Part shown: one piece after another, positions 16,012-57,204 of the stretch | How positions within the stretch are numbered: position 1 is the stretch's first letter | Layout: every line of letters starts with the position of its first letter | NCBI GenBank assembly: GCA_000388065.2 | Contig: KB932202.1 | Strand: one strand, 5' to 3' | Length of the DNA: 61,691 bases | From: Fonticula alba ATCC 38817 | Lineage: Eukaryota > Protista > Nucleariida | Notes under the pieces: model-generated | Seen by the model: only the letters and a program-made list of their open reading frames with translations | What the model was told of the DNA's origin: nothing | Database searches by the model: none | Program-made: the position numbers and the translations under genes

Positions 16012-19000
16012 AAGCGCTCCCATGCAAATGAGGTCGCCGGCAGTGACAAGTGCGCGTGCGGGCGCGCGCGCACGGCGGGCGGGACACGCACGTTTCGTAG
16101 GTGCTGTTTGTGTGGGGCACAAAATAGAGCCCGGCCAAATCCGAGCGGTTCAGCGGCAGCGACGGCTGGATGGTGTTGGCCACGGCGTCGCCCTGCGGGA
16201 TGCCGGGGATGAAGTTGGTGGACTGCGATTTCCCCGGGCAGGGGGGAGGGGGGCCATGTTAGCGCGCAGCCCTGGGCGCAAGGAGCGCGGAAGGGAGAGC
16301 AAGAGGAAAAAGAGCAACCCCCAGAGGGGCATAGCAGCCTATCGGCGGCGCCCCCTGCGAGGCCTCCGTACCAGGCTGATGAAGAGCTTGACCGCGCCGT
16401 CGACCACATGCGTGCCGAGGGACTGCTGGTGGCTGAGAGCAAAGGCATCGGCGGCGATGGTGGCCGCGGGGCCCTTGCTGCCGCGACTGGCGGTCGCGGC
16501 CGCCGCGTCACCGCCACCAAAGCGCAGGAGAGAAATGCGCGAGTAGAGCCAGTTCTGCCGGGAGGGGAGGCACGTCAGACGCCGGGCACCGGGCGCGGGA
16601 GCCAGGAAGGCCCACCAGGGGACCAGGGGGGGGGGGGGACCAGGACATACCATGCTGTGGGAAATGATGGCCAGGGTCTCCATGCGGGCGGGGCTCAGCT
16701 CGAACTTGAGCGCCGCCTCCGACAGGACGGTCGACCCGTCGTCGTATGCCGAGAAGGGGGACACCGCGCCCGGGGAGTAGTACGTCGGTCCGGAGCCAAT
16801 GTGCGACCGGCCGAAGTCCGCATGCTGGGCCGGCTTGTTTCGGTAGTCCGGCTGCTCGGTCTTGCGAATGGACCGCATGCGCGCGCGGTCCTCGTCGAAG
16901 TCGCGCCGGCACAGCTGGTCCGCGGTGAGGAAGTCATTCTGCAGCCGAGGAGCACCAACCAGGGGCAGGGTGGCCGGCCGGGGGATGGGACAACCCCCGC
17001 CCGATTCCGCGAGCCCAGCAGCAGGCCGAGAGTCAGAACGCGCCTTCCAAGAGACCCCCCTGGAGCAGGAAGAAAAAAAAAGACGGCCGAACGCGTGCGC
17101 CGGGGAGGGGGGGGGGGGGGGACCACCACGCTTGCGCACCACGCAGATGTTTTTGAAGAGATGCTCCAGCCGGTCGGCCGAGGGTTGCAGGTCGCTCGGC
17201 AGGATGTCATACGAGGCCTGCTCGATGCCGGACACCAGCAGATTGTTGCTGGCCCGCGAAAGGATATTCTGCCCGAGGGTGTAGTACTTCTTCACCAGGG
17301 CCACGGCCAGCTGGACGATGGAGTCCCGACATTCGGCCGGCAGGCCCAGGCGCTCGGACCGCGACGACACGAAGGCCAGCTCGGCCAGGATGGCCAGCAG
17401 CCGAGCCGCCGACCGGAGGACCGGCGGTCCGCTCGGCTGCGGACACACCTCCGGCACCGGGCTTTCCGCGCTCAGGGCCGCCAGGCTGCCGGCCGGCAGG
17501 GCCCCCGCGTGAACCTCCGCCGGCCCGGCCCCGGCATTGTACTCGAACAGGCGGTTGACCTCTTGGAAAATCTCCAACGAGATGGTCTCCGCTCGGGAAA
17601 AGAGCGCCGGCAGGAAGGCATCCATCATGAAGCGCCGCAGGTAGTCGCTGAAGCCGAGGACCGCGGCCGAGCCCGGGGAGCCCGACCCGGTGGACCCGAG
17701 CCCGGCCCCGGGCCCGGCCGAGGAGTCGCCCCCGAGGCCGGGGCTCCCGCCCGCCGGCCCCGGCGCCGGTCGCTTGGCCGCCAAGGTGTTGATGCTGCCG
17801 CCGATGGCAAAGTAAAACTTCTCCATGGCCAACTTCCCATAGTTCGAGGGGACAAACTCCGGCGGGGCAATCGACAGCGAGGCCTTGCACCGGCGGAAGC
17901 AGACATCCGTGAAGGACCGAATGGGGCCCGTCACCACGATGGTCAGGCAGGCATTCGGCATGGCCAGCAGGCGATGCCCAGTGACACCGGTCTGCCCGGC
18001 CGATGTGCCGGATTCGGCGTCGGGCCCGAGAGTGTGCAGAAGCCCATGAGAGCTGCCCAGTGGGCCGCCGGTGGGGGAGCGGCCAAAGCCGGGCCCCGGG
18101 GGGGGGGGGGGAATCCAGGCGGCAGAGAGGCGAGGGTGAGTGTCTGGCGCATTTGCGCATCAGCCAGCGGGGAAGCACAGCGGAAGCAGGCACGAACCTG
18201 GTCGAGTGGGCACGCAGGTGGTCGGTCACGGCCAGCGATGCGCGCGAGTTGGCCAACTTCAGGAGCTGGCCTCGGCCAAGGACGGGGAGAGGAGGTTAGA
18301 CAAAGCGGCGCCCCCACCGGGCCAGTGCAAACAACATGCCCCCCCCCCCCCCCCCCCCCCCCCCGGCCATCGCTCCGTGTGTGTGTGTGTGTGTGTGTAT
18401 GAGAGAGAGTCCCTCCCTCGTGCTCGTTGCACACCCCTTGCAGCTGCTTCCCGGGGTGGAGACGCACCCCCCGGCCCTGGGCATTGATGGAGTCCACGGA
18501 GGCACCGGGCTTCTTGGCGACCGTTTGCGGGCGCTTGAAGCCGAAGATGCCGCCCGAGTCGGAGATGTTCTGCGTGATGGTCTTGGACATTTCCGACAGC
18601 GAGGCCATCGTCGCGGCCAGGGTGGAGCTTGTATCGATCGACCGGATGGACAGGTAGTCGTCCATGAAAACGCGGAGCTGCACAGCGAGCAAGAAGCCGG
18701 TGAGTCAAATGCGCGTGCTGGCGGGCGGCCACACAAAGGCCGGGGCGCAGGCATGGCAGCGGCCCTGAGGGAGGGCCAGCCGGCCTGCTCTCTCCCCCAG
18801 CATGCCCTGTGCGTGTGTTCAGATGCAAATGTGTGCACGGCCGCATGTGCGCGTGTGCGCGTGTGCGCGTGTGTTTGAAAAGCAATGCGCGCACCTCCCG
18901 ATCGATGGCAATCCAAATGGGCTCAATGGGCGGGAAGCGCGCGTGCGCATTCGACGAGATGGTCTGGTACATGTCCATGTGGGACTTGGGCGGGGCCGAG

Positions 19001-51530: not shown

Positions 51531-52750
51531 TCACTCGTCGGTCTTGCGCTTCTTGCGCACGACACTCTGAATGTCGGAGATCGGGGCATCCGGCGAGACC
51601 CCGGGGAAGGGATTGCGCTTGGCACCGGCACCGGAGGCCGGCTGGCCGGGCGCGCTGGCGCCAGCTGCCCGGGAGGACCCGAGCCCGAAACCGGCCGCCA
51701 CATCGGAGAAGGCCTCCGACGCGACGCGCTTCATGTTGCCGTACTCCGCCTCCAGGGCGTCCACTTCGCGGCGCTTGGCCTGCATGAGGGTGATCAGGTC
51801 GGCCAGGTCGCTGGAGGCGGTGGTCGCCGTGTTGGCCGACGTCCGCAGCGTGGCGATGGCCTCGTCCAGGCACCGCCGCGCGCCGCGGAAGTCGTTGGTG
51901 AGCAGGTGCGCGCGCAGCCGGTTGAAGTCCGTGTTGGCGGCATCCAAATGGCGGGACCGAGGGGAGGGGGGAGGGGCAGGAGAGAGAGAGAGAGAGAGAG
52001 AGTGGGGGGGGGAAACAGGGGAGGAGGATGCGAGTCAAGGAAGCACACCGTGGATTGAGAGGAGAGGGGGCAAGCGTCAAAGCGGAGGGAGTGGCGCGAG
52101 AGGCACAGGCAAAAAGGGGCCCGGAGAGGGGCACAGAAAGCAGAGGCACAGAAAGGATATAGTTCGGCGAAGCGGCGCGCGTGCTCCGGGTTGTCGCGGT
52201 CAAGGAAGGACGCGCTTTTGTCGAATTCCGCGAGGGCAAGCTCGGCGTTGGCCGCTGCACCAGGCAGCGGCCGGGCGCACGGGCACAGCAGGTGAGCATG
52301 GAGCAGGCAGCGCGGGCAGGGCCGGCAGGCCCTCAAAAAAGCAGGTGGGGCAAGGGGCAGAGCCGCCAGGGCACGCACAGTCATCAATGTAGATCTGCCC
52401 CAGGTAGTTGTGGACGCGCGCAAGGCCCAGGCGGTTGGAAGTGCTCTCGAAATGAAGGCGGGCAATCTCAAACATCTCCCAGGCCTCGTCGAAGTCGTCC
52501 AGTGTCTCGGGGTCCGCCTCGTCGGCGGCCTCGTCCGAGTTACCGGTGGCGGCGGCGGCCGGCTTGGCGGCCGGCTTGGCGGCGGCGGTGCTGGCGGTAG
52601 CCCCGGAGGACGACGCCTGGAAGGGGTCCACGCTGCGCACGGCCCCCTCGAACAGGGCCACACCGTAGGTGAAGTGGTCGTTGGCAAAGTCGTCATCCAT
52701 CTCCATGGCGAGGCTGGACCTGTGGCCCGGGGACATGGCGAGGATGGGCG

Positions 52751-52812
<62 letters not shown>

Positions 52813-53520
52813 CGTCAAAGAGAAGAGGGGGTCAGAGATGGGCGTCTTTGGGCCACACGCGCGCATGGCGTTGCCCCGTGGCGCCTGTCGCCCGCTCACA
52901 CATGCATGCATGGACACATGGCGAGACCGACGCCGGGTGTGCATGGCCCCCCCCCACCAAAGTCCACACATACCGGAGGGTCAGCACGTCGGAGGCCAGG
53001 CGCTTGAAGAGCTCCGAGCTCTCCAGCGAATCGTCGTCATTTTGCGTGAAGGATTTGATCGACTTGCGGACCGTGTCGATGACGGCCAGGCGCTCGATAT
53101 CTGCAGCGCACCGGGGGGGGGGGGGGGGGGCGTTTCGGGGGTAAGAGCAAGAGGGGGGTGAGTGGCGAGCCATTCATCCATGCGAGACCACCTCCAGGGA
53201 GGAGAAGGCGAGCGAGCAGAAGGGGAGAGGCAGAGAGCGATCCACCCGCCCACATGGCCTGGACTGGGTGGCCGGAGACGGGGAAAAAAAAACAACAACC
53301 GAGGACGGGGCGCACCGTTGTTGCAGCCGGCAAAATACCGCTCGAGGACCTGCTCGGCATCCTCCTCGATGACGTCCGGGTCGGAGTCCTCATCGCCAGC
53401 GGGCGCCGCGCCGTCGGCGTCGCTGCCGCTGTCGTCCTCGCTGTCGACCACTGAAAAGACGAACTGCTGCTCGGCGGGGGCATCCTGCCCGGTAGACTGG
53501 TCATCGGTGTCCTTGGACAT
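51531..53520 (-). CDS. NASP: NASP/Sim3/Hif1-family SHNi-TPR histone chaperone
   Basis: DHFTYGVALFE, DDFDEAWEMFEIARLHF, LARVHNYLGQIYID, RRFAEL and C-terminal ISDIQSVVRKKRK. Exons 53520-53316, 53100-52974, 52719-52379, 52254-52161, 51930-51531. The last intron is AT-AC. Confidence 0.9.
51931..52160 (-). other. U12-type (minor spliceosome) AT-AC intron, 230 nt, phase 2
   Basis: 5' end ATATCCTTTC, 3' end CCAACAC. No AG dinucleotide occurs inside. TTCCTTGAC lies at 52042-52034. Splicing gives RRFAEL-DFNRLRAHLLTNDFRGARRCLDEAI in frame. Confidence 0.85.
52752..52812. repeat. About 60-nt G homopolymer (poly-C on the NASP transcript) in NASP intron 2
   Basis: Directly visible run of G. Confidence 0.9.
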
Positions 53521-54332: not shown

Positions 54333-55115
54333 CGCCGCCGCTTCATCCTTTCCCCGCCCCATGTTCGCCATTCGCGCTGACATTTGTGGCCCGCCGGCCT
54401 GATCATGCTCAGGATCGAAAAATACCGTCCCTCCGGCCTGGAGGAGGTCGTGGCCCAGGAGCACATCGTCTCCACGCGTGCGTGCTTCGCCCTCCCTCTC
54501 TCCCCCTCCCTCTCTCCCCCGCTCCCCACTCTAAATGGACACCACCGCCCCGTCTGACCCCCCCTCGCCCCCTTTCCGACCCGCCAGTCAAGCGCTTCAT
54601 CAATCAGAAGCAGCTGCCTCACTTGCTTTTCTATGGACCCCCAGGCACGGGTAAGACCTCCACTGCTCTGGCCTGCTGCCGGGCTCTCTATGGCCCGACC
54701 TTCGGCAGCATGGTTCTCGAGGTGCGCTCTCCCTTCCGCCATCGCCCCCCACCCCCGCCCCCCCCCCCCCCCCCCCCCCCCCCCCGTCGGGCGAATATGC
54801 CCCCCGCCCCCGCAGGCGCTGACCCCTTTCGCGCATGCACACACCCTTCGCACAGCTAAATGCCTCGGACGAGCGCGGCATTGCCACCGTGCGCGATCGC
54901 ATTGTCTCCTTCGCGTCCACCTCCTCGGTGAGCTTCCGCTCGGCGACGGCCGACCGCGTCGGCTTCAAGATGGTCATCCTCGACGAGGCCGACGCCATGA
55001 CCAACATCGCCCAGGCGGCCCTTCGCCGGAGTGCGTTTCCCTTGGCCCGAGGGCCCGGCCTCTGTCCTTCTCTCCGCTGCCGCTGGCACCCGCCCGCCCG
55101 CCCCCCTCGGCCTCG

Positions 55116-55156
<41 letters not shown>

Positions 55157-56292
55157 ACCCCCCCCCCCCCCCCGCCTCCCCCCCCCCCCCCTCCTCTTCC
55201 CCTGCCCACTTTGTGTCGCCCCCAACTCCCCTTCCCCCCTGCCTCGCCCACCGATAAACCGAGCGCTTAGTTGCACACATGCCCATGCACATACACACGC
55301 ATCTGCCTGGAGGGGGGAAAACACGGGGTGCCCTTGGCAGGGCCTTCGGATAGGGAGCCGTAGTATTGCACGGCGCGTGTCGAACACATGCGTGCGCGCG
55401 CAGNNNNNNNNNNNNNNNNNNNNNNNNNNNNNNNNNNNCATGCCTCATGCAGCTAATGCCCCTCTCTCCCCCCCTCTTCCCTCCCGCGGGGCATGCCTTT
55501 GTGCGTGCAGTCATCGAGAAGTACACCAAGCATGTGCGCTTTGTGTTGATTTGCAACTATGCGGCGCGCCTGATCCCGGCGCTGCAGTCGCGCTGCACCC
55601 GGATGCGCTTCGGCCCCCTGGGCCTGGAGAAGGTCTCCGACCGGGTGAAGGAGATCGCCGCTCTGGAGAAGTGCGCCCCGGTTGCCATGCCCCTTTCGCC
55701 TCCCCCCCCCCCTCCCCCCTTGGCTCCTCGATGCAGGACTCCCCACTGACCCGATGGCCGGCCCGTGCCCAGTGTCCGCATGACCCCCTGCGGGTTGCAG
55801 GCCCTGCTGCGGCTGACCCATGGCGACATGCGCCGCGCCCTGAACATCCTCCAGGCGGCGCATGCGTCCGTGTCGGACGAGGCCGACCCCTCGACCAGCG
55901 GCGGCACCGACACCGGCGCCGTCAACGCCACGGCCATCTACCAAACCACCGGGCATCCGCACCCGGATGACGTGGAGCTGGCCTTCAAGTGGCTCCTCAA
56001 TGAGGACTATGTCGGGACCATCAGCCGTGCGTGCCTTGCTCCTTGCGCATCCTCCCCTCGCCCGCCCGTCGGCCCGCGGCCCTGCTCCTCCCCTCGCCTT
56101 TCTCCACACCAGCCACTGACCTCTGGACCTGGGTCGCCTGCCTGCCCGCGCCCGCCCCCCCGCCCGCCCGACAGGCTTGGAGGACCTCACCCGGAACAAG
56201 GGTATCGCGCTGCAGGACCTTGTCCGGGAAATCCACCCGCTGGTTCCGCTCGTACGTGCTTCTGCCGGTTGGGCGCGCGCACTCCCTCCCTG

Positions 56293-56338
<46 letters not shown>

Positions 56339-56684
56339 GCCCTTTCCTCGGTCTTTCCTGGCTGACCTCCCTCCGTGCACCTGCATCGCTGACGGGTTGC
56401 TCTTCCCTCACAGCTGGACATCCCCAAGGAGGCGCGCATCTTCCTGCTTGACCAGCTCTCGGAGCTTGAGTGCGTCTCCTCGCTGCCTGACTCGCTGCCA
56501 CGCCACATGCACATACGCCGTCCTGGAGGCTGACCCCCCGCCCCTCTCCCCCTCCCCCACGCCCTGCAGGTACTCACTGGCGCAGGGATGCAGCGAGCAC
56601 TTGCAGATCGGCTTCCTCGTTGGCTTCTTCCAGGAGTGCAGGCTGGTTATCTCTAGATTTGTGGCCCCGGCGGCTTCCTCGTAG
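54234..56684 (+). CDS. RFC5: Replication factor C small subunit (human RFC5 / yeast Rfc3)
   Basis: LPW|IEKYRP, Walker [19 protein letters not shown], Walker [18 protein letters not shown] and [11 protein letters not shown]. Exons 54234-54283, 54413-54477, 54588-54721, 54856-55030, 55511-55670, 55773-56026, 56175-56251, 56414-56469, 56570-56684. Confidence 0.95.
55255..55403. repeat. Copy 1 of a duplicated element (RFC5 intron 4); copy 2 at 56797-56945
   Basis: A 19-nt block and a 95-nt block are identical between copies at a constant offset of 1542, separated by a 35-nt unrelated core. Upstream flanks are also similar. Confidence 0.85.
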
Positions 56685-56796
56685 GTGGCGGCCTCCTGCG
56701 CTGTGGCTCCATGCCTCGCCCCCCCCCCCCCCCTCCCCTTCCCCTGCCCCCTTTGTGTCGCCCCCACCCCCCCCCCCCCCCTCCCTCCCCCCCCGC

Positions 56797-56945
56797 TAAA
56801 CCGAGCGCTTAGTTGGCACGTTAGGCAGTTTTCAGTTCAACTAATGCGACGGAGGGGGGAAAACACGGGGTGCCCTTGGCAGGGCCTTCGGATAGGGAGC
56901 CGTAGTATTGCACGGCGCGTGTCGAACACATGCGTGCGCGCGCAG
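56797..56945. repeat. Copy 2 of the duplicated element, between the RFC5 and lipase stop codons
   Basis: Matches 55255-55273 and 55309-55403. Contains the inverted repeat TTAGTTG (56809-56815) / CAACTAA (56838-56844). Confidence 0.85.
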
Positions 56946-57204
56946 GGCGGCACACAGGGGCACGGCTGGACAAAAGGACGGTGCGACGATGGCAAGGCAA
57001 CACTCGCACGCCCGTCAGCACGCGATACAAGGACATATGGGAGGCACACCCCCCGGGCGAGGGGCGAGATAGGGAACGGGAGGGGAGCAAGGGCGCAGGG
57101 CCAAGGGAGGTCATGCGCATGGCGCTTGCCCCCCGGGGGGGGGGGGGCAGGCAAGGGGAGGGGACCCACTCAGCCGGGCCCCGGGCGGCGCACAGGACGA
57201 GGGG

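Follow-up and report, generated by a model that had tools for sequence, protein, structure and literature searches.

Introduction

The closest described counterparts of the intron analysed in this work are the U12-type AT-AC introns of animals and plants. U12-type splicing in animals needs a branch site placed about 10-20 nt ahead of the 3' splice site, and the GUAAGGAA box of the U12 snRNA pairs with the branch motif TTCCTTGAC. AT-AC ends are also found in introns of the major (U2-dependent) type, which carry major-like donors (ATAAGT or ATACGT) and are not known to contain the TCCTTRAY motif. The gene concerned, NASP, belongs with N1-N2, Sim3 and Hif1 to the SHNi-TPR histone chaperones.

An AT-AC intron, the fourth of the gene, interrupts H696_01431 of Fonticula alba (contig KB932202.1, assembly GCA_000388065.2), which is contained in the stretch of 61,691 nucleotides (61.7 kb) that was analysed and that is called the window hereafter. 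This intron resembles the U12-type AT-AC introns of animals and plants in its AT-AC ends, its donor ATATCCTTT, its TTCCTTRAY branch motif and its precise excision, and also in being the only one of its type among the major introns of a housekeeping gene. It differs from the U12-type introns of animals in the position of the branch motif, which is placed 104 nt upstream of the 3' splice site, and from classic U12 introns in the long C/T-rich tract that follows this motif. With the major-type AT-AC introns it has only the termini in common and, unlike them, it contains both U12 motifs. Introns of the U12 type are well known, and the existing annotation of the gene is correct; the main weight of the finding lies in the distant branch motif and in the probable deep conservation of the intron.

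Structure of the gene and identity of the encoded protein

The coding range of H696_01431, from start to stop codon, extends on the minus strand over positions 51531-53520 in both the spliced model and the public protein of 388 amino acids, and the gene range given for H696_01431 on KB932202.1 agrees with the limits of the spliced model. The coding part of exon 1 (53316-53520) is followed by intron 1 (53101-53315), a GT-AG intron of 215 nt (GTGCGC...CAG) defined by its signals and by the RNA joint 53100/53316. Exon 2 (52974-53100) and exon 3 (52379-52719), both placed by the model and by RNA, flank intron 2 (52720-52973), which is also of the GT-AG type, measures 254 nt and is backed by RNA and signals. 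Intron 3 (52255-52378, GT-AG, 124 nt) corresponds to the RNA joint 52254/52379. Exon 4 (52161-52254), supported by sequence, model and RNA, ends with ...GCC GAA CT, where the AT-AC intron begins. This intron 4 (51931-52160, 230 nt) lies in phase 2 within the codon of Leu256 and is documented by its sequence, by an exact RNA joint and by a counterpart in Marchantia. The last of the five coding exons (51531-51930, from the model and hhalign) encodes the last TPR, a coiled coil and the conserved ...VRKKRK tail, and includes the stop codon. All these features are on the minus strand. In intron 2, an uninterrupted run of C of about 70 nt (52753-52830, minus strand) separates the 3' site from the branch-like motifs CTGAC/TTGAC, which lie 95-112 nt away from it; intron 1 likewise contains a C run, about 20 nt long.

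The full-length H696_01431 protein was obtained by a region-restricted protein search on a stop-free stretch, and its UniRef name is 'Tetratricopeptide SHNi-TPR domain-containing protein'. It is identical to the AT-AC-spliced model in 388 of 388 residues, so the AT-AC intron is already correctly annotated, and the suspicion raised in the sequence-only reading that automated annotation mis-modelled the gene has proved wrong. The identification of the gene as NASP made in the same reading stands. In an hhalign comparison with a profile of 21 NASP sequences built without H696_01431, the protein was matched at 99.8% (E 1.9e-27) over residues 106-388, a region that takes in the interrupted TPR, the LAWE motif and the C-terminal ...VRKKRK tail. 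A phmmer search against the PDB gave Arabidopsis NASP as the best match (9e-4) and human NASP as the next one (0.02), and it reproduced the gap-free alignment to human NASP that had been proposed over the junction. The SHNi-TPR domain was present in 17 of 19 aligned sequences (H696_01431 plus 18 of its hits in an exhaustive phmmer search), and the profile of this alignment, which includes H696_01431, matched human NASP at 5e-86. With H696_01431 alone, the Pfam SHNi-TPR domain did not rise above threshold and only TPR_12 was found, under the cut-off (E 0.0019); Pfam and PDB searches carried out with single exons returned only noise. Judged by these comparisons, the H696_01431 protein is a divergent NASP, a histone H3-H4 chaperone.

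Excision of intron 4 from the NASP RNA

Intron 4 is exactly excised from Fonticula alba NASP RNA. An RNA-assembly contig of 497 nt (run X1, depth 11.4) joins position 51930 to position 52161 without any positional ambiguity ('both' = 0), precisely at the junction that had been predicted for an AT-AC intron, and the ends of the skipped segment, GT..AT when read on the plus strand, correspond to AT..AC on that of the gene. This joint comes from one assembled contig of one run and says nothing about minor isoforms or retention. No RNA contig covered intron 4; the material consisted of assembled contigs and not of individual reads. Of the words sampled from the NASP gene, about half were present in four public runs of one study, as would be expected of spliced mRNA.

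The joined exons read ...RRFAEL/DFNRLRAHLL..., with the frame open through to VRKKRKTDE and the stop codon. The length of intron 4 is 3n+2, so its retention leads to a frame shift and to an early stop that cuts off the last TPR together with the coiled coil and the VRKKRK tail; comparison of the spliced and retained models has confirmed this effect, which had been foreseen from the sequence.

It is hardly credible that the joint is an artefact caused by an assembly error or by a genomic deletion variant and not by splicing. Such an origin could be argued from the single contig, from the run type, which is presumed to be RNA, and from the (CT)n repeat in the skipped part. However, the same contig likewise skips the neighbouring canonical GT-AG intron 52255-52378 and a second RNA contig skips the remaining two, introns 1 and 2; in addition, the joint is unambiguous, restores both the frame and the conserved TPR alignment, and is identical in the independent public annotation.

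Splice signals of intron 4

Intron 4 opens with ATATCCTTTC and closes with CCAACAC, and the absence of any AG throughout its 230 nt, on which the sequence-only reading had relied, has been verified. The U12-type signals claimed in that reading are also present, in the form of a complete donor and one exact branch motif. The 5' splice site ATATCCTTT (52152-52160, minus strand) agrees with the U12-type consensus RTATCCTTT in all 9 of its 9 positions. Sequence and RNA establish CAC (51931-51933, minus strand) as the 3' splice site, and a further AC is present 2 nt upstream of the one used. The motif scan located the putative branch-site motif TTCCTTGAC at 52034-52042 (minus strand), corresponding to intron positions 119-127. 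It is the sole exact TTCCTTRAY within the intron, where the runner-up has three mismatches, and the chance of finding an exact branch motif in an intron of such composition is about 0.004.

Two copies of the RTATCCTT 8-mer were counted in the 61.7-kb window, versus 0.28 expected, and TTCCTTRAC was also found twice, versus 0.23 expected. The second RTATCCTT, ATATCCTT at 17260-17267 (minus strand), was considered as an intron start and rejected because it is exonic, being placed inside coding sequence (...GQNILSRA...). The other exact copy of TTCCTTGAC is in exon 4, at 52199-52207 (minus strand), where it covers the codons S-F-L-D and precedes the AT-AC donor by 38 nt; this copy is probably due to chance, and less probably a decoy or an old duplication.

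The set used for comparison consisted of nine RNA-supported GT-AG introns, three of NASP and six of the adjoining RFC-subunit gene. Their donors are GTGCG, GTACG or GTATG and their branch motifs mostly CTGAC or CTCAC, clearly unlike the signals of intron 4. By its motifs, intron 4 would belong to the U12-type AT-AC class, an assignment that is well supported.

Conservation of intron positions in NASP genes

The introns of NASP genes of other organisms were placed on the protein alignment. Intron 4 of the Marchantia polymorpha gene MpNASP (L010:3147-3490, AP031354.1, 344 nt) occupies the same alignment column as Fonticula intron 4 and is also in phase 2, with Leu256 of Fonticula aligned to Thr229 of Marchantia; hhalign independently agrees with this placement. 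The Marchantia intron reads GTATCCTCC...TCTTCCTTAATTGAAGCAG, with GT-AG ends, and contains the donor GTATCCTC and the branch motif TTCCTTAAT, the branch A being 9-10 nt before CAG. From these signals it can be classed as a textbook U12-type GT-AG intron. The two introns are alike in gene family, aligned codon, phase, U12-type donor and branch motif, and they differ in that the Fonticula intron is AT-AC, 230 nt long and has its motif at 104 nt, whereas the Marchantia intron is GT-AG, longer, has its branch site close to the 3' end and shows no pyrimidine bias.

The coincidence in codon and phase with a U12-type intron of Marchantia indicates that intron 4 is ancient, and the two introns are very probably one ancestral intron, whose GT-AG ends in one organism and AT-AC ends in the other point to a subtype switch. 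The phase-2 position, for which the sequence-only reading had proposed a comparison with plant or animal NASP genes, is shared with the plant but not with the one animal sampled, the fish Syngnathoides, in which the site has no intron. The site is likewise without intron in the sampled ichthyosporean Sphaeroforma, fungus Tieghemiomyces and amoebozoan Balamuthia. The NASP gene of Amoeboaphelidium (fungi) has no intron at the site and is intronless as judged by its length, and three homologues from metagenome or Logan data, each consisting of a single ORF, likewise lack an intron there. Nor is NASP listed among the minor-intron genes of human and mouse in the tables of Olthof 2019. The simplest reading of this distribution would be that the minor intron of NASP predates the plant/opisthokont split, that it is now GT-AG in Marchantia and AT-AC in Fonticula, and that it has been lost in the other lineages sampled, animals and fungi among them.

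Other introns of the gene have counterparts as well. The position and phase of Fonticula intron 2 (phase 2, between (I/L) and R in ...L(E/T)(I/L)R) are common to Marchantia, fish, Tieghemiomyces and Balamuthia, and on this alignment intron 2 is a very old major-intron position. Fonticula intron 3 lies at most one codon from an intron in Marchantia and in fish.

Assignment of intron 4 to the minor spliceosome

It is very likely that intron 4 is a genuine U12-type AT-AC intron of the Fonticula NASP gene, descended from an ancient minor intron that Marchantia has kept as a U12-type GT-AG intron, and its motifs suggest that it is cut by the minor spliceosome. In the proposed mechanism, U11 and later U6atac would pair with ATATCCTTT at the 5' end of the intron, and U12 would pair with TTCCTTGAC. 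Two splicing steps would then join ...GAA CT to G GAC..., with the frame restored across the last TPR and the coiled coil, down to and including the VRKKRK tail, a nuclear-localisation signal. An unspliced NASP transcript would be frame-shifted and would end early.

It is very improbable that the major (U2-type) spliceosome cuts this AT-AC intron and that the minor one has been lost from the organism. AT-AC introns of the major type are known in other eukaryotes, and the minor machinery has so far been searched for in the 61.7-kb window only, where the Rfam scan (gathering and E-value thresholds) gave no snRNA but low-complexity noise (mir-297, ZEB2_AS1), and where no minor-specific protein was found. 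Nevertheless, ATATCCTTT and TTCCTTGAC are both exact U12-type consensus sequences, the nine nearby RNA-supported GT-AG introns carry other signals (GTGCGT/CTGAC), and the orthologous Marchantia intron is of the U12 type; furthermore, there would be no pressure to preserve both motifs if the minor machinery were missing. Removal of intron 4 by the minor spliceosome would imply that minor splicing has been kept in the nucleariid lineage, a deep-branching relative of fungi.

No paper joining Fonticula with U12 introns or with the minor spliceosome was found in the library searched, although large surveys may include this genome without naming it in the text. Neither Fonticula nor NASP is named in the text or the available supplement of Larue & Roy 2023 (PMC10639083), and Fonticula is not named in the supplements to the CENATAC paper. 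The same library gave no paper linking NASP, or At4g37210, with U12 introns; the papers naming At4g37210 seem, from their titles and abstracts, to be unrelated to splicing.

Distance between the branch motif and the 3' splice site

The 3' splice site of intron 4 lies 104 nt downstream of the branch A of TTCCTTGAC, well outside the spacing of about 10-20 nt needed in animals. C runs and a (CT)n tract make up the intervening spacer (51934-52033, minus strand), which is about 80% pyrimidine and free of AG. One AC in this spacer, 32 nt beyond the branch A and 71 nt from the intron end, is not used.

The nearby GT-AG introns are built in a similar way: their nearest CTRAC-like motifs are found 21-112 nt from the 3' site, with AG-free tails of 36-126 nt or more. 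In view of these distant motifs, it is somewhat more likely than not that TTCCTTGAC is the branch site used and that the spacing has been relaxed in Fonticula. We lean, with some reserve, towards a minor spliceosome that in Fonticula uses the consensus branch site 104 nt upstream and that would have lost the tight spacing regarded as inherent in U12-type splicing, in parallel with the major introns that combine a distant branch site with a C/T tract.

The other arrangement considered also involves the minor spliceosome, with the branch formed at a non-consensus adenosine no more than about 20 nt from the 3' site, so that TTCCTTGAC at -104 would be a relic stranded by expansion of the C/T-rich low-complexity sequence. 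This arrangement seems rather unlikely, even though it would agree with the short branch-to-3' distance that U12-type splicing needs, adenosines are available at -13 and -19, and the skipping of the AC in the spacer shows that no simple rule of 'first AC after the branch' applies. Every candidate in the last 55 nt of intron 4 has at least 4 mismatches in 9 positions. An unused 9-mer would be unlikely to remain perfect in a fast-evolving low-complexity intron, given the probability of a chance match mentioned above, and distant branch motifs are also a feature of the major introns of NASP and of the adjoining RFC-subunit gene. The use of TTCCTTGAC as the branch site of intron 4 consequently appears the better reading of the motifs.

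If splicing does proceed from the distant motif, introns of this kind could be under-counted by classifiers that restrict the search for a branch motif to roughly the final 55 nt, automated surveys may miss minor introns in similar genomes, and intron 4 would offer a natural system to study how the minor spliceosome selects the 3' splice site.

The adjoining RFC-subunit gene

The gene located at 54720-56569 (plus strand) was named as an RFC-subunit gene from its Pfam hits and contains six RNA-supported GT-AG introns. Their donors are GTGCG or GTACG and most of them have a CTGAC motif at 21-55 nt from the 3' site, with CTAAT/CTCAT at 54-63 nt in one intron.

Just after this gene, at 56717-56954 (plus strand), there is a C-rich low-complexity segment in which the summed contig depth reached about 250-510x, versus about 10x in the flanks, with the peak at 56758-56954. 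Backward joints (56782 to 55699) were observed at this depth peak, and Rfam returned only a sub-threshold lncRNA hit. A small RNA was considered as its origin and discarded; the peak is most likely due to cross-mapping of C-rich contigs.
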